Part shown: positions 49,524 through 57,652 of the stretch, piece by piece
Layout: each line of letters starts with the position of its first letter
Numbering within the stretch: the stretch's first letter is position 1
Sequence record: NC_048182.1
DNA length: 64,000 nt
Strand: one strand, 5' to 3'
Position numbers and translations under genes: made by a program
Notes under the pieces: model-generated
Databases searched by the model: none
Seen by the model: the letters and a program-made list of their open reading frames with translations, nothing else
What the model was told of the DNA's origin: nothing

Positions 49524-49552
49524 CCCAACTACCTCCATTAGGGGTAGTTGGG
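49524..49552 (+). terminator. intrinsic terminator
   Basis: CCCAACTACCTC-CATTA-GGGGTAGTTGGG followed by a T-rich tract. Confidence 0.75.
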
Positions 49553-52486: not shown

Positions 52487-53269
52487 ATGAGTATTGAAAA
52501 AGATAAAGATGGTAACATCATCTTAAACGTTGGTAAGTCAGGTGAATTAAATCATAACGGTCGCGTTTATCTTGACGGTTCCAAAATCTCTGCTAAACAC
52601 GTTAATGCTATTCCCCGCATTATTGATGAAAATATGATGCCGGTTCCTTCAACTAAGATTGTTGAAGATGAAATGCATTTCGAAAAATGTGTTGCCATTC
52701 CGCCAGAAAGTGATGTAACCCATTATGGTTACGACGGAAGCCCACTCGATAAGCTGGCCATGAAGAACGAATACAAATTCGAATCTTGGCAGAAAGCGAT
52801 GAAAGAGAATCCTGGTGATGTACTCGAGATTGACTCTTTGGGTGGTGTTACTGGTGAAATCAAGGGCGTCCAACTTAATCACACTCAGAAACCGGTCAAG
52901 ATTCTCTATACTGGTCCGCGACCTACTATTTCTAATCAAGACTGGGGTCGTATTCTGGACGCTGGACGCAACATTCCTGTCGAGGATATCTTTGCAGCTA
53001 TGGAAGGCGATGTCCAAATCGTCCATATTGATGACGTTCATTGCGATATGAGCTCTCCCCGTAAAACTATGTTGGGTTTAATGCACGCTGGGTATTCTCC
53101 CGAGCTTGCTCGTTTCTCTGACATGGAAGGTTATAGCCGTCATTACTTCCCTGTAAAAGAAAAGGAAGTTACTCCAACTGTCAGCACCAATGGTCGGCAG
53201 AAAATCATTGACAATGGTAAGCGTCAATGGCCTGAAGCAAAACGTCGCAAAGGTCACCGCAAGGGATGA
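52487..53269 (+). CDS. hypothetical protein with basic C-terminal tail (WPEAKRRKGHRKG)
   Basis: 260 aa, SD AAGGA. Confidence 0.75.
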   Translation: MSIEKDKDGNIILNVGKSGELNHNGRVYLDGSKISAKHVNAIPRIIDENMMPVPSTKIVEDEMHFEKCVAIPPESDVTHYGYDGSPLDKLAMKNEYKFESWQKAMKENPGDVLEIDSLGGVTGEIKGVQLNHTQKPVKILYTGPRPTISNQDWGRILDAGRNIPVEDIFAAMEGDVQIVHIDDVHCDMSSPRKTMLGLMHAGYSPELARFSDMEGYSRHYFPVKEKEVTPTVSTNGRQKIIDNGKRQWPEAKRRKGHRKG

Positions 53270-53520
53270 TCTTTTATGTAAAGCCTGGCGAAACTTATTA
53301 TAGTCCGTCAGGTACACCTTTTAAAGTTATAGAGATTGTCAAGCATGGTCAATGTTGCATGCGCGATATGGTTCTCTATGAAAACCTTGAAGACACCAAA
53401 GATTCCAAAGCGGGGACTCATTGGGTTATAGATAAGGGAATGTTTCTAAAAGCATTCTCAGAGGAAAAACCAAATGCCAATAATAATGACGTATATAGGG
53501 GAATCGGAAGACTTCCCTAA
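53266..53520 (+). CDS. DUF1653-like small protein
   Basis: GETYYSPSG..FKVIEIVKH...DMVLYENL...HWV....MFL..F follows the DUF1653 pattern G.Y.H.KG..Y.V...A.H....VVY..L....W.R....F... Confidence 0.6.
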   Translation: MIFYVKPGETYYSPSGTPFKVIEIVKHGQCCMRDMVLYENLEDTKDSKAGTHWVIDKGMFLKAFSEEKPNANNNDVYRGIGRLP

Positions 53521-53713
53521 AGCTAAACAAAGAGTTGAGTTGTTTAATGGTAGGCCTGTCAGGTTAGTTGTGGGTCAGCCGTTTGGTAACATCGCTCGTG
53601 TTATCAAAGGTATTCAGGGTACATCGGCTTTCACCGAAGGTCGTAATACCAAAATCCGTCATGGGAAGGCTGGGGCTTGGCCTGTTCCTAAATCAAAAGG
53701 CAACCGTTTTTAA
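53474..53713 (+). CDS. hypothetical basic protein
   Basis: 79 aa, SD GAGGA. Confidence 0.6.
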   Translation: MPIIMTYIGESEDFPKAKQRVELFNGRPVRLVVGQPFGNIARVIKGIQGTSAFTEGRNTKIRHGKAGAWPVPKSKGNRF

Positions 53714-53725
53714 TAAGGTATAAAA

Positions 53726-55099
53726 ATGATAGAATGGATTATGGGGCTGTACCAATCGGTATTAGACCAAACTGCACACATGCCACAAGCGCAATCTGCT
53801 TTAGTAACAATCAGTTCTGTTTCTATTGCAGGTGGGATTGCGTTTATGCTGATCAAGTTACCACGTGCTATTGGTGACTTCTTCCGTAAACAGTGTATCA
53901 CCAGTTTGGTCTTTAATACCTCGGCTACCTCTTACAGTCAATACAACCAAAAGCAATATCTGGCATTCCTTCGTTGGTTCTCTAAGAACGCCTGGTTTGG
54001 TTGGAGTCGTATTATCACTCTTGATGGTGAGCAGTGGTCGGATAAAGGTGCGGTAGGTCCCGGTGTTGGGACTCACTTCTTTGTCTATAAAAGACATTTC
54101 TTCTTCTTTAAAATAATGGAGCAGGAATCCCAAGGGTCTGATTTCTCTAAATATAAAATCTCTATCTCTGTCATCGGTCGTAACAAACAACCACTGTATG
54201 ACTTGATGGAAGAGTTTATGATAAAGTCAGACCGCGATAAAAATATCACTGTTTACAATGCCAAAGGCGGTGAATGGCTATGGATGACAGAAACTGAACA
54301 TCGTGTTAAAACATCCATGATCATTTCTGAGAATGTTAATAATGAACTTATTAAACCTCTTCAGGAATGGCGTGATAATAAACAGTGGTATGTCGACCGT
54401 GGATTGGATTATAAGTTTTGTGCTTTGCTGTACGGACCGCCAGGGACGGGTAAGAGTTCATTAGCCCGTGAGATTGCTTTCATGTTGAAACGTAATCTCT
54501 ATCTGTTAGCTCCTGACGGGACAGTTAGTTATCAGCAACTGTTCCAGCAAGCTAAGGGCGGCCTTATCCTGATGGAGGACATTGACACCTATGGAGTCAC
54601 TCGTAAACGTACTGGTGATGAAGTGGATGTTAAAAGAGGAATAATTAAACCTATCGAGAAGAAAGATCAAGTTACCGGTAAGAACGACATTGGTAAAGAA
54701 GAAGATAAACTTGGTGAAGCAATGGCTGAGTTTATGGGCGGAAACCTTTCTGATTTGCTTAATGCGCTCCAGGGCGTAATTCCTCTCGACGATCTAGTCA
54801 TCCTGATGTCAACCAACCATCCTGAAAAACTGGACAGTGCTTTAATCCGTGACAGTCGTGTGGATGCTCGCGTTGAAGTTGGATATATGTGTTCTTCTGA
54901 CATTGCTCTTTACTTTGAGCGGGCTTACGGCGTTACATATGAAGGTCCGTCTTTCCCTTCTCTTCCAGCGGCAACGGTTAGCGATGCATTCCTGTCTAAC
55001 AAGTTTAACCCTGAAGGATTTATCAATAAGCTGATTTCCAACAATTTGGAAGAACAAGCTTGCGAGCCATTCTTGTTAAAAGACGTGGCTAACAGTTAA
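53726..55099 (+). CDS. Bcs1-like membrane-anchored AAA+ ATPase
   Basis: N-terminal TM (ALVTISSVSIAGGIAFMLI) and a BCS1_N-like middle region (GPGVGTHFFVYK). Walker A GPPGTGKS, Walker B ILMEDID, SDLLNALQG, and MSTNHPEKLDSALIRDSRVD (Bcs1 consensus TTNHPEKLDPALIRPGRVD). Confidence 0.85.
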   Translation: MIEWIMGLYQSVLDQTAHMPQAQSALVTISSVSIAGGIAFMLIKLPRAIGDFFRKQCITSLVFNTSATSYSQYNQKQYLAFLRWFSKNAWFGWSRIITLDGEQWSDKGAVGPGVGTHFFVYKRHFFFFKIMEQESQGSDFSKYKISISVIGRNKQPLYDLMEEFMIKSDRDKNITVYNAKGGEWLWMTETEHRVKTSMIISENVNNELIKPLQEWRDNKQWYVDRGLDYKFCALLYGPPGTGKSSLAREIAFMLKRNLYLLAPDGTVSYQQLFQQAKGGLILMEDIDTYGVTRKRTGDEVDVKRGIIKPIEKKDQVTGKNDIGKEEDKLGEAMAEFMGGNLSDLLNALQGVIPLDDLVILMSTNHPEKLDSALIRDSRVDARVEVGYMCSSDIALYFERAYGVTYEGPSFPSLPAATVSDAFLSNKFNPEGFINKLISNNLEEQACEPFLLKDVANS

Positions 55100-55109
55100 G
55101 AGGTGTGAA

Positions 55110-55355
55110 ATGAAAATTGCCCCCAATTGGATAATGATAGTGTTGGGCATTATCCTTGCATTTGGTTGTGCTTGGGCTGTTTGGATTATCTATAACGACT
55201 CTCGTGTAACTCCCAACGATGCTGTCGGTTTATGGGTACTCGCCAGTATTTGTGGTGTATTCTCATTGATTGCAATTGTTGGTGAACTATTTGGGGGTCG
55301 TATCTTAAAAGCAATGTACGGTGATTTTTCTAATCGTAATCCATGGGGGCGGTGA
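55110..55355 (+). CDS. small two-TM membrane protein
   Basis: 81 aa with two hydrophobic helices. Confidence 0.7.
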   Translation: MKIAPNWIMIVLGIILAFGCAWAVWIIYNDSRVTPNDAVGLWVLASICGVFSLIAIVGELFGGRILKAMYGDFSNRNPWGR

Positions 55356-55669
55356 TGACAAAAATTCATCAACGCTCTGAACTGGATTTCTTTATCTGTA
55401 AACGTTTTGAAAACAAGAAAGCAACCTTCTACATTCGTGATGGAAAGTCTTTCATGTATGTCGGAAATGAGAAAGTTGAAATGGATGAAGTGGACCCCAA
55501 CGAACCTGAGGATCCTGAATATCCACGTGTCGTTCTCAGTAAAGACATTAAACTAGAAGGGTTCATGTACTTCTATCAAAACGAGCAGTATTACGGTTTA
55601 GTGTTTATTGATGGTAAACGTAAACACTCACCTATCGCTATTAAATTTGGAAATGGGTTGGAAGAGTAA
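55355..55669 (+). CDS. hypothetical protein (paralog of 55669)
   Basis: ORF 55343..55669; probable TGATG-coupled start at 55355. Confidence 0.7.
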   Translation: MTKIHQRSELDFFICKRFENKKATFYIRDGKSFMYVGNEKVEMDEVDPNEPEDPEYPRVVLSKDIKLEGFMYFYQNEQYYGLVFIDGKRKHSPIAIKFGNGLEE

Positions 55670-56001
55670 TGGCTATTGAATTTGAAAGCGTAGATTATGC
55701 TGGTTGTAAACTACTGGTCAACTCCCAAGCAAAGGTTATGATTCGCAAAGGGAAAGCGTTCGTTTATATTAATGACGTCAAGTATGACCTTCCAAATTTG
55801 TCCGACAATGAGCGTGCTGTTGACGAAGAAATTAAACCTGGTGTAATGACTCAGAATCTGGATTACTCTAAAGACTTTACCTTCGAAGGGGTCTTTATGA
55901 TGTTCCAGAATACAAAAGGTTATGTTTGCTTTGTTATGAAGCAAGACCGTCGAGAGTTGCCTGTGGTAATTCGCATGGCAGAACTTCCTACTATTAATTA
56001 A
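55669..56001 (+). CDS. hypothetical protein (paralog of 55355)
   Basis: 110 aa; shares IR.GK.F.Y....K..(M/L) and SKD...EG....(Y/F)QN motifs. Confidence 0.7.
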   Translation: MAIEFESVDYAGCKLLVNSQAKVMIRKGKAFVYINDVKYDLPNLSDNERAVDEEIKPGVMTQNLDYSKDFTFEGVFMMFQNTKGYVCFVMKQDRRELPVVIRMAELPTIN

Positions 56002-56011
56002 GGGATTAGCA

Positions 56012-56335
56012 ATGGCAAAGTTTTATGGCAAGAATGGGGATTGGGCTATCCCCATTGCGGCGATCCTTATCTTTGGTATGTTCTGGGGTGCCAAAATCGC
56101 AACTGGAGATAAGAAGCTTACAGAAAACAGTAAGATCTTTCTGGAGACTTATGGTTACGAAGAAATCGTAGTTAATCCAAAAGCCATTGGGTGTCGGTTT
56201 GACGATGTGATGTCCTTCGATGACCGTGGTCGTGCCTTTACCGCAGTGATGCCGTCAGGTAAGAAAATTGGGGGTGTCGTTTGTACTGCAAAGAACGACG
56301 TCTCTGTATTAAACGTTAACTATCAGGAGCAATGA
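56012..56335 (+). CDS. membrane-anchored small protein with Cys pair
   Basis: 107 aa; N-terminal TM, then GCRFDD...F.A....G..I.GVVC in the exported part. Confidence 0.7.
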   Translation: MAKFYGKNGDWAIPIAAILIFGMFWGAKIATGDKKLTENSKIFLETYGYEEIVVNPKAIGCRFDDVMSFDDRGRAFTAVMPSGKKIGGVVCTAKNDVSVLNVNYQEQ

Positions 56336-56799
56336 TGACTGAGCTTGAAAAGACTGTACGGGGACAAAGTGCTATTCAAATCTTGGGTAAAGTAACTGAT
56401 GTTGTTCTGGACTTTAAAGATCCAGAAGGTAAAACCTGGATAGAACACCAGCAAGCTCAACAGAAAGCATTTGAGCTGAATGAACGTATGTGGGAACTGT
56501 ATAAACAGTTCAAAGGGATCACTGACTTCAAAGAACGTTTTGATTTCCTTGAAGTTCACGGTACCTTTAACCACAGTAAGTTCTACTCGATGTCCAAACG
56601 TCGTCAGAAGCGATTCTTGGCTAAACAGTTTGGCTTCTACTATCATGCTGAAAGTGAACGCTTAGTTCCAATGTATCGCCGATTTGGTAAGGACATCTTC
56701 TTACTGAATCCTGTCTTCAAATTCGAAGAACCATTGGGTAAACCATTTGTAAAAATGATGGAAGCCTGGGCTGATATATTAGTGGGAGAGCAAGGTTGA
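56332..56799 (+). CDS. hypothetical protein
   Basis: 155 aa, ATGA-coupled. Confidence 0.7.
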   Translation: MMTELEKTVRGQSAIQILGKVTDVVLDFKDPEGKTWIEHQQAQQKAFELNERMWELYKQFKGITDFKERFDFLEVHGTFNHSKFYSMSKRRQKRFLAKQFGFYYHAESERLVPMYRRFGKDIFLLNPVFKFEEPLGKPFVKMMEAWADILVGEQG

Positions 56800-57539
56800 T
56801 GTTAACAGCTGAAGATTTAATCCCACGCCCTGCCGATGTTGGTGCGATTACTGAACCGAGTTATCCATTCCCAATTAATCACCTGGATAAATTCCCGGTG
56901 ATGTTGGTCGTTCCAGATCGCGTATGGAAAATCTTTACCAAAATTGGTACTGATGAAACTTATACGTTAATAGCTGAAGCTCTTTATCGTGTATCGTTGT
57001 CCTTCTGTATTACAGGGAACCGTACATACATTAATAAGCTGGGTTTGTCTGACAACGATGTTAACTGTATCGCTACCTGGTTAGAGAAGGAAGAAGGGCA
57101 GTTAAAAGACGCGGTTCAGAATTGGCGTAAACATGTCCTGAACACGTTGTTCAATAACTACAAGCAACCAAAGACCACGTTCAGTGAATACAAGGCGAAT
57201 CAGTTTATTCGTCTATGGTCACGTTCCTGGTTAGACGGCTTGCGCCAGAAAAACAACACAGTTCTATCAGCCAACGAACTTGTTGATCATCTCATAGCTT
57301 CTCAAATCAATCTGGATAAAGGTTGGTTAAACTTATGGAATCGTTATCAGGTTCCAGGTGAGAAAGTTTATGAAGATCTGGTTATGATGGAAGCTTGTGT
57401 AGATGAGAAAGTCGAGGCTTATGAAACAGAACCAGAACCACGTGGTGAGTTTCTAGCTTCTAATGGTCTGCGTGAAATCATTACCGGTCCACAAGGTAAT
57501 CGTTATCCGTCCCCAAAGCGTCGTAAAGGTTCTCGGTGA
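56796..57539 (+). CDS. hypothetical protein with basic C-terminal tail (YPSPKRRKGSR)
   Basis: 247 aa. Confidence 0.7.
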   Translation: MMLTAEDLIPRPADVGAITEPSYPFPINHLDKFPVMLVVPDRVWKIFTKIGTDETYTLIAEALYRVSLSFCITGNRTYINKLGLSDNDVNCIATWLEKEEGQLKDAVQNWRKHVLNTLFNNYKQPKTTFSEYKANQFIRLWSRSWLDGLRQKNNTVLSANELVDHLIASQINLDKGWLNLWNRYQVPGEKVYEDLVMMEACVDEKVEAYETEPEPRGEFLASNGLREIITGPQGNRYPSPKRRKGSR

Positions 57540-57652
57540 GAAAGCGTCGTAAATATTTCCTTATAGTACTCGTTGTGCTATTTGGATATACCTTCTGGTC
57601 TGGTACGCAGACCTTTATTAACCATTATGAAATTCACAGAGGTGAAAAATGA
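57536..57652 (+). CDS. 38-aa single-pass membrane microprotein (below the ORF-track cutoff)
   Basis: GTG start overlaps the upstream TGA (GTGA), SD AAAGGT, and its TGA overlaps the next ATG. Translation: MRKRRKYFLIVLVVLFGYTFWSGTQTFINHYEIHRGEK. Confidence 0.65.
   Translation: MRKRRKYFLIVLVVLFGYTFWSGTQTFINHYEIHRGEK

Follow-up and report, generated by a model that had tools for sequence, protein, structure and literature searches.

A Bcs1-family AAA+ ATPase gene in the jumbo Edwardsiella phage pEt-SU, with a corrected start and without conserved partners next to it

The ATPase gene and its domains

The genome of Edwardsiella phage pEt-SU (MK689364.1, 276,734 bp) was analyzed through a window of 64,000 nucleotides of record NC_048182.1; the region matches MK689364.1 at 100% identity (window coordinates are coordinates of that record minus 62,000). 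Here we focus on positions 53726-57652 of this window, which span pETSU_106 to pETSU_112, all labeled hypothetical in GenBank, and in particular on the first gene, pETSU_106, which encodes a Bcs1-family AAA+ ATPase. pEt-SU is a phiKZ-like, nucleus-forming jumbo phage with split multisubunit RNA polymerases; it encodes a PhuZ-like tubulin (Pfam TubZ_C_2) and a chimallin, pETSU_002, which shares 70% identity with the protein annotated as nuclear shell in Pseudomonas phage OBP. The features of the ATPase gene are as follows.

53726..55099, plus strand: Bcs1-family AAA+ ATPase pETSU_106, 457 amino acids (a.a.) (open reading frame (ORF), Pfam, PHROGs, PDB sequence match, Foldseek)
53798..53854, plus strand: N-terminal membrane helix, residues 25-43, predicted N-out/C-in (hydropathy, flanks in homologs, AlphaFold2)
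53897..54298, plus strand: beta-rich, Bcs1-specific middle domain, residues 58-191 (Pfam BCS1_N, AlphaFold2 strands, GPGxGxH motif)
54329..55054, plus strand: AAA module, residues 202-443 (invariant residues, Pfam AAA, alignment of the second region of homology (SRH) to Bcs1)
54434-54460, 54563-54586 and 54788-54865, plus strand: within the AAA module, Walker A, Walker B, and sensor-1 with the arginine fingers, respectively
54620..54745, plus strand: charged, low-confidence insertion of ~40 residues (299-340) between Walker B and sensor-1 (gap in the PDB alignment, predicted local distance difference test (pLDDT))

Two Pfam families match the protein: BCS1_N (PF08740) at residues 103-190 (E-value 2e-10; 41.4 bits against a gathering cut-off of 28.1, covering model positions 78-174 out of 182) and AAA at residues 234-387 (1e-15). 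In PHROGs it is assigned to phrog_7485 (6e-114), whose function is listed as unknown. Among solved structures (PDB), Bcs1 of yeast and of mouse gives the best sequence matches (~5e-29), with the next AAA protein at 3.5e-14; the alignment to yeast Bcs1 begins at residue 72 of pETSU_106 and takes in both the middle domain and the SRH segment.

An AlphaFold2 model was built from an alignment of 50 homologs (the same alignment was used for the search of cluster representatives described below; the rows of phiKZ, Psa21, phiTE and RSF1 were left out of it). The model has a pLDDT of 85.6 and a predicted template modeling score of 0.74, and consists of a long helix (residues 20-57), the beta-rich domain (58-191) and the AAA module (202-443), with C-terminal helices modeled as well. 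When it was compared with the PDB by Foldseek, the top 12 matches were all full-length Bcs1 in different nucleotide states, with 406-468 aligned columns (best match 8.7e-26 over 468 columns), followed by Bacillus subtilis YjoB (2e-14) and proteasomal ATPases.

The residues expected of a working ATPase are invariant across the 50 homologs: Walker A (G237-S245, GPPGTGK), E284 and D285 of Walker B, N364 of sensor-1 and the arginines R375 and R378 (the invariant single residues of the AAA module are G237, P239, G240, G242, K243, E284, N364, R375 and R378). The GPGxGxH motif of the middle domain (G113/G115/H117) is conserved in the family alignment too. Membrane segments were called where the Kyte-Doolittle mean over 19 residues reached a threshold of 1.6. 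By this measure pETSU_106 has one hydrophobic segment (residues 25-43, with a mean of 2.12), and 41 out of 50 homologs have an N-terminal segment at or above the threshold; the C-terminal flank of the segment is the more positive side in 50 out of 50, which predicts an N-out/C-in topology, the orientation of Bcs1.

The GenBank start of pETSU_106 lies at 53846, 40 codons late, and cuts the membrane helix in half. We take 53726 as the correct start, because the first 46 residues are conserved residue by residue, from residue 1, in Erwinia phage AH04, and because the ATG at 53726 has a Shine-Dalgarno-like AAGG 8 nucleotides 5' of it; the longer start is also found in other homologs. The correction restores a membrane anchor that has been lost from the public annotation.

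The initial annotation of this DNA, made from the letters alone, had seen a complete Bcs1 architecture here (N-terminal membrane helix, BCS1_N-like domain, and AAA module with a Bcs1-type SRH). This stands: both of the Pfam profiles that it named are matched, the sequence and fold matches lead to Bcs1, and the predicted topology is conserved. As far as sequence and modeled fold can tell, pETSU_106 is a genuine Bcs1-family ATPase with a predicted membrane anchor and an intact AAA module.

Relatives in phages, bacteria and eukaryotes

Mitochondrial Bcs1 (BCS1L; PDB 6sh3, 6uko, 8tp1 and 9gs2) is an AAA protein that translocates the folded Rieske Fe-S protein as a heptamer. Like it, pETSU_106 has an N-terminal membrane helix in the same predicted orientation, followed by a BCS1_N middle domain and by an AAA module of the classical kind, whose SRH segment is near-identical to that of Bcs1. 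Unlike it, pETSU_106 (~22% identical) lies outside the eukaryotic clade and has no Rieske client encoded nearby. Phylogeny was examined in a quick maximum-likelihood tree, midpoint-rooted, in which the eukaryotic sample (12 sequences) consists mostly of fungal paralogs and the metagenomic rows are for the most part of unknown origin. All 12 eukaryotic sequences group together in a single clade (support of 100 in the Shimodaira-Hasegawa-like approximate likelihood ratio test, SH-aLRT) and pETSU_106 falls in a separate phage clade; this comparison, which the initial annotation had proposed, therefore makes pETSU_106 a homolog of mitochondrial Bcs1 and not an ortholog.

Closer relatives are found in other jumbo phages. 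The BCS1 orthologs phiKZ gp286, PhiPA3 gp347, AH04 gp163, CR5_117 and FBKp24 gp174 belong to the same family, have the same architecture and are 26-61% identical to pETSU_106, which differs from them in nothing of kind; it is merely annotated as hypothetical, with a truncated start. We found an ATPase homolog in 160 phage records, including phiKZ (PHIKZ286) and PhiPA3, and several GenBank phage records name the gene 'mitochondrial chaperone BCS1'. The family extends beyond the phiKZ-like group to phiTE (Vequintavirinae, 142 kb), to Caulobacter and Brevundimonas phages and to alphaproteobacterial siphophages of 80-150 kb. In Treponema primitia a homolog stands alone on the chromosome, surrounded by ordinary bacterial genes. 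When 1.84 billion cluster representatives were searched with a profile, 11,004 matched at E<=1e-30, the top 150 of which are all full length (400-480 a.a., six being longer).

Within the tree, an Enterobacterales-phage clade (SH-aLRT 99) contains the copies of pEt-SU, AH04, two Derbicusvirus phages, FBKp24, pEa_SNUABM_54 and three metagenomic contigs, whereas those of the Pseudomonas phages phiKZ and Psa21 and those of phiTE and RSF1 branch apart from it, and the phiKZ-like phages do not form one clade. The Enterobacterales-phage clade spans the genera Petsuvirus, Meadowvirus, Derbicusvirus and Maaswegvirus. Such a cross-genus clade hints at exchange of the gene among phages that share hosts.

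In seven phages (PA1C, PS119XW, phiHQ, BRkr, SL2, Bobae and Raoultella phage VB_ZK_P1) the ATPase match comes in two pieces over 1.4-2.2 kb, sometimes as two annotated genes. The split suggests either a frameshift or the presence of an intron, intein or homing endonuclease between the pieces.

Outside the phages and Bcs1 itself, the next-best fold match is YjoB of B. subtilis, a bacterial AAA+ protein with an N-terminal domain (PDB 7w42; ~440 aligned columns). At 15% identity, YjoB is a far weaker match to pETSU_106 than Bcs1 is, and some phage copies are annotated as YjoB. YjoB is a soluble protein that is not known to have a membrane anchor. Bcs1-like ATPases of giant viruses of eukaryotes, annotated as BCS1 (Catovirus, Clandestinovirus, Medusavirus, Mimivirus and others), match by fold in BFVD at 1e-26 to 1e-16; they are 13-20% identical to pETSU_106 and often longer, and as the hosts of these viruses have mitochondria, their biological setting is likely to be different.

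The initial annotation had ranked this locus as a candidate for an undescribed system. In fact, BCS1 orthologs were described in all three major groups of jumbo phages by Iyer, Anantharaman, Krishnan, Burroughs and Aravind in 2021 (PMC7824862), who also proposed that they bind and translocate folded proteins during membrane-proximal virion assembly, so both the family and a translocase hypothesis were already in the literature. An AAA+ ATPase mentioned in a preprint on Avs5 was considered as a further report of the family and rejected, as the mention refers to Avs5 itself.

Genes around the ATPase

The genes on either side of pETSU_106 in pEt-SU are as follows.

52487..53713, plus strand: upstream ORFs pETSU_103 to pETSU_105, with a basic C-terminal tail on pETSU_103 and pETSU_105
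55110..55355, plus strand: pETSU_107, 81 a.a., two membrane segments (hydropathy)
55343 (55355)-55669 and 55669-56001, plus strand: pETSU_108 and pETSU_109, soluble phrog_8284 paralogs (PHROGs; BLASTP E-value of 7e-12 to each other)
56012..56335, plus strand: pETSU_110, membrane-anchored, with two conserved cysteines (hydropathy, family alignment)
56332-56799 and 56796-57539, plus strand: two soluble ORFs inside the run, the second being pETSU_112
57536..57652, plus strand: unannotated ORF of 38 a.a. with a GTG start, a basic N-terminus and a hydrophobic core (ORF list; conserved in contig L028)

The initial annotation had described these genes as a tightly coupled run of small membrane and exported proteins and had taken them for substrates or partners of the ATPase, with which they would form one folded-protein translocation or membrane-remodeling system. 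Its description of the single genes largely agrees with ours: the protein encoded at 55110 has two hydrophobic segments, the two soluble proteins are paralogs, and the protein at 56012 has an N-terminal hydrophobic segment followed by two cysteines that are invariant in seven family members. The invariant pair suggests a small disulfide-bonded domain, and pETSU_110 probably carries this domain in the periplasm. The hydropathy of its 38-a.a. membrane microprotein (1.48) is slightly below the threshold; the ORF is conserved in contig L028 (7287-7412, E-value 3e-7) and takes up precisely the space that pETSU_112 and pETSU_113 leave between them, stop and start codons overlapping. Owing to the conservation in L028, it is probably a real membrane microprotein.

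A few details of these genes may be added. The C-terminus of pETSU_107 is a conserved MYG(D/E)FSNRNPWGR, common to Shewanella phage SXP01 (locus L019, 5170-5577) and L028 (4844-5092). A second paralog of pETSU_110 is encoded at 162578-162829 of the pEt-SU record, outside the window, and L028 has two copies. An AlphaFold2 model of the phrog_8284 paralogs from five sequences (pLDDT 62.7) was too low in confidence for a fold search, and a word-index homolog search with them returned only copies ~87% identical. None of the 13 flanking ORFs has a Rieske domain or another recognizable client domain by Pfam, NCBIfam or PADLOC. Genes for toxins or effectors, intact or disrupted, were not seen in the region.

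The genes downstream of the ATPase are co-oriented with it, and their stops and starts overlap or lie ~10 nucleotides apart. The coupling seen in the initial annotation is real; it is not special to the run, which in that description also omitted the soluble ORFs at 56332 and 56796. Genes are packed as tightly over the whole of the ~11 kb (~20 co-oriented genes) that strong terminator-like hairpins at 49524 and 60357 delimit. Nor are membrane proteins enriched: two or three out of eight ORFs downstream of the ATPase have a hydrophobic segment, compared with 48 out of 289 gene models (17%) in pEt-SU as a whole and 20 out of 79 (25%) small ones. A scan for sigma-70 promoters was uninformative (24 sites versus 30.3 in shuffled sequence), because phiKZ-like phages use their own RNA polymerases.

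If the small proteins were partners of the ATPase, the genes would be expected to travel together. At thirteen other loci, every ORF up to 7-10 kb to either side of the ATPase gene was compared with the proteins that flank it in pEt-SU. Only two of the loci have homologous neighbors near the ATPase: AH04, whose ATPase is 61% identical to pETSU_106, and contig L011, where it is 59% identical. The order of the neighbors differs from that in pEt-SU, even in AH04. No homologous neighbor was found in these flanks in ten other phages or contigs: contig L010 and pEa_SNUABM_54 (ATPase ~50% identical), contig L012, FBKp24, CR5 and Phobos (43-45%), and Psa21, phiTE, RSF1 and phiKZ (26-31%). Annotated terminators further separate the ATPase gene from one of its two neighbors, the downstream one in FBKp24, where the terminator comes directly after the gene, and the upstream one in phiTE.

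The converse is also seen, i.e. the block of neighbors without the ATPase. Contig L028, the closest relative seen (neighbor proteins 35-87% identical, order kept), has homologs of pETSU_100, 101, 102, 103 and 105 and then directly the homolog of pETSU_107, with a stop/start overlap and no ATPase in between. OBP and SXP01 likewise keep the neighbor block without an ATPase in it: homologs of phrog_8284 (OBP_180 in OBP) and of pETSU_110 (OBP_177 in OBP) are found in OBP, SXP01 and L028, each without the ATPase at that position. In OBP the gene is not elsewhere either. The whole OBP genome, assembled from six fetched pieces, has no ATPase homolog by tblastn (E<=10) or by a 50-member family profile, the same profile reaching 2.8e-180 on pEt-SU.

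The neighbors are therefore not conserved with the ATPase, and the gene-neighborhood comparison on which the initial annotation had staked its partners speaks against them. In favor of a multi-gene system there remain the co-oriented, closely spaced genes, the recurrence of the gene set near the ATPase in AH04 and L011, and small membrane proteins, non-homologous to those of pEt-SU, in the first few genes downstream in Phobos, probably CR5, pEa_SNUABM_54, L010 and RSF1. Enrichment of membrane proteins beside the ATPase across clades was considered on the last of these grounds; it is suggestive in four or five clades and not significant given their relatedness and the baseline of 17-25%. The pattern of presence and absence largely refutes the idea of one dedicated system made of the ATPase and the downstream small proteins, which we consider very improbable. 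As judged from gene content, pETSU_106 is a single optional (accessory) gene, and the small genes downstream are not its conserved partners.

Over 189 shared genes, the median protein identity to pEt-SU is 54.5% for OBP and 49.1% for AH04; the closer of the two, OBP, has no ATPase, so that the simplest history is ancestral presence with repeated loss. Between pEt-SU and AH04 the ATPase is 61.5% identical, compared with the genome median of 49.1%. By these comparisons the ATPase gene is under constraint where present, and yet dispensable. Clustering by host in the tree, taken together with the sporadic loss, would fit an adaptation to the envelopes of particular hosts.

In each phage, three proteins that are otherwise unlike one another share a basic C-terminal tail of ~28 residues, roughly (T/S)NG..RQx(I/V)(I/V)xGxxxx(W/Y)PxxK(R/K)(R/K)KG. 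In pEt-SU the carriers are pETSU_103 (52487-53269), pETSU_105 (53474-53713) and pETSU_112 (56796-57539); the tail is limited to these three ORFs in the 276 kb of pEt-SU scanned, and all of them lie within 3 kb of the ATPase. It can be aligned over 14 proteins of five phages (pEt-SU, AH04, OBP, SXP01 and L028), whether the ATPase is present or not, and might bind nucleic acid or act as a peptide for binding or sorting. A role as targeting signal for the ATPase was considered and ruled out, as the tails are also found in OBP, L028 and SXP01, which have no ATPase at the locus.

A small basic ORF of 54-58 a.a. lies immediately upstream of the ATPase gene in FBKp24 (gp173; locus L004, 6739-6903) and in L012 (6715-6891). 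The two share the motif EYWSxRP...PG..SK.LTHRAER, which has no sequence kinship to the tail motif of pEt-SU. Elsewhere in the pEt-SU record, outside the window, three consecutive giant ORFs (3,124, 5,119 and 1,488 a.a.) annotated as hypothetical occupy the minus strand at 131109-160452, with counterparts in OBP and AH04.

Possible function

We lean toward reading pETSU_106 as a stand-alone accessory ring ATPase of the Bcs1 family that works on folded proteins at the inner membrane of the host. By homology to Bcs1, the ring would sit at the cytoplasmic face of this membrane and spend ATP to move, insert or extract a folded protein client. The direction would be from cytoplasm to periplasm, by analogy with the matrix-to-intermembrane-space direction of Bcs1, and the client could come from the host or from a phage gene at another locus.

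Several observations weigh against this reading. PF25426, the model of the Bcs1 lid, is found on fungal and amoebal matches and on none of the phage-clade matches; on pETSU_106 itself it is not reported at E<=1, where the C-terminal helices are modeled and their sequence differs. The charged insertion of ~40 residues after Walker B is absent from mitochondrial Bcs1: residues 299-341 of pETSU_106 are unaligned against residues 334-342 of the Bcs1 chain (pLDDT there 51-60), and the spacing from Walker B to LLNxLDG has a median of 56 in the phage clade. The insertion is near the position of pore loop 2, and the mechanics may thus differ from those of Bcs1. Gene content points to no convincing partner: thirteen genes are common to pEt-SU and AH04 and missing from OBP, all of them except the ATPase being weak or paralogous matches, and phyletic profiling over these three genomes found no gene with the distribution of the ATPase. 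Our literature search found no knock-out, localization or structure of a phage member. The sole experimental data that it turned up (Fossati et al. 2023; PMC10449902) concern phiKZ gp286, which is 26% identical to pETSU_106: gp286 and its upstream neighbor gp285 were recovered in the same fractions as 70S ribosomes, and cross-links joined gp286 to the L7/L12 stalk proteins RplL, RplK and RplJ, with no membrane transport shown. In phiKZ, gp285 directly adjoins gp286 upstream (locus L005, 6096-8404) and is not homologous to it, both proteins being reported as ribosome-associated.

Among the alternatives, the published one places the ATPase in virion assembly, as a chaperone near the membrane that loads or translocates folded proteins into the prohead (Iyer et al. 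2021; PMC7824862). The concentration of the family in phages with large virions would fit, and in RSF1 the ATPase is encoded ~4.6 kb from the large terminase gene. However, the copies in pEt-SU, AH04, CR5, FBKp24 and Psa21 sit among early or metabolic-type genes (thymidylate synthase, kinase, RNase H) and not among head genes, OBP makes a very similar virion without the ATPase, bacterial chromosomes carry stand-alone homologs, and we found no virion-proteome data that place it in the particle. We therefore regard this role as unlikely.

A little less likely still is a factor that acts on host ribosomes or nascent chains, perhaps at the membrane, instead of transporting folded proteins. The ribosome association of phiKZ gp286 and gp285 and the cross-links of gp286 to stalk proteins argue for it, as do the strongly basic tails on ORFs adjoining the ATPase in pEt-SU, AH04, FBKp24 and L012. 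But this is a single proteomics study of an ortholog with only 26% identity, and a large membrane-bound ring might elute together with ribosomes simply because of its size. The cross-links carry less weight also in that L7/L12 is an abundant protein and readily cross-linked. The basic-tail proteins stay in OBP and L028 without the ATPase, and a ribosomal role would leave the membrane anchor and the Bcs1 middle domain unexplained.

A role specific to the phage nucleus or to the early infection vesicle (protein import or vesicle remodeling), the latter also raised in the initial annotation, is improbable to a greater degree. pEt-SU has the chimallin and the PhuZ-like tubulin mentioned above, and many carriers of the ATPase are phiKZ-like; but homologs occur in phiTE, in alphaproteobacterial siphophages and in a bacterial chromosome, the phiKZ-like phages are not one clade in the ATPase tree, and the nucleus-forming OBP does without the gene. 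Least probable of all is a defense or counter-defense ATPase related to IetA, since the weak matches to IetA in PADLOC (2.4e-11) and IteA in NCBIfam (8.4e-8; 31.8 bits against a cut-off of 510) reflect a local likeness around the P-loop only (residues ~170-268, and 195-268 for NCBIfam), no IetS-like protease partner is encoded nearby, and Bcs1 is a far better match over the full length.

For a stand-alone Bcs1-family ATPase at the inner membrane, as we prefer to see pETSU_106, the finding that it is a single optional gene directs the search for its client to the host envelope or to other parts of the phage genome, away from the adjacent genes. pEt-SU on one side and L028 and OBP on the other are natural pairs of near-identical blocks with and without the ATPase, and offer a ready comparison. 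We also raise, tentatively and as a possibility that we would not expect to hold, the broader idea that the Bcs1-like ATPases of phages and bacteria are true folded-protein translocases of the inner membrane. They would then serve export independent of the twin-arginine translocation (Tat) system, as an optional module by which large phages place a folded protein, of phage or host, in the envelope, and would be prokaryotic ancestors or analogs of mitochondrial Bcs1. If this were true, proteins already folded or assembled would have a third route besides Tat, and the phage proteins would bear on the origin of mitochondrial Bcs1.

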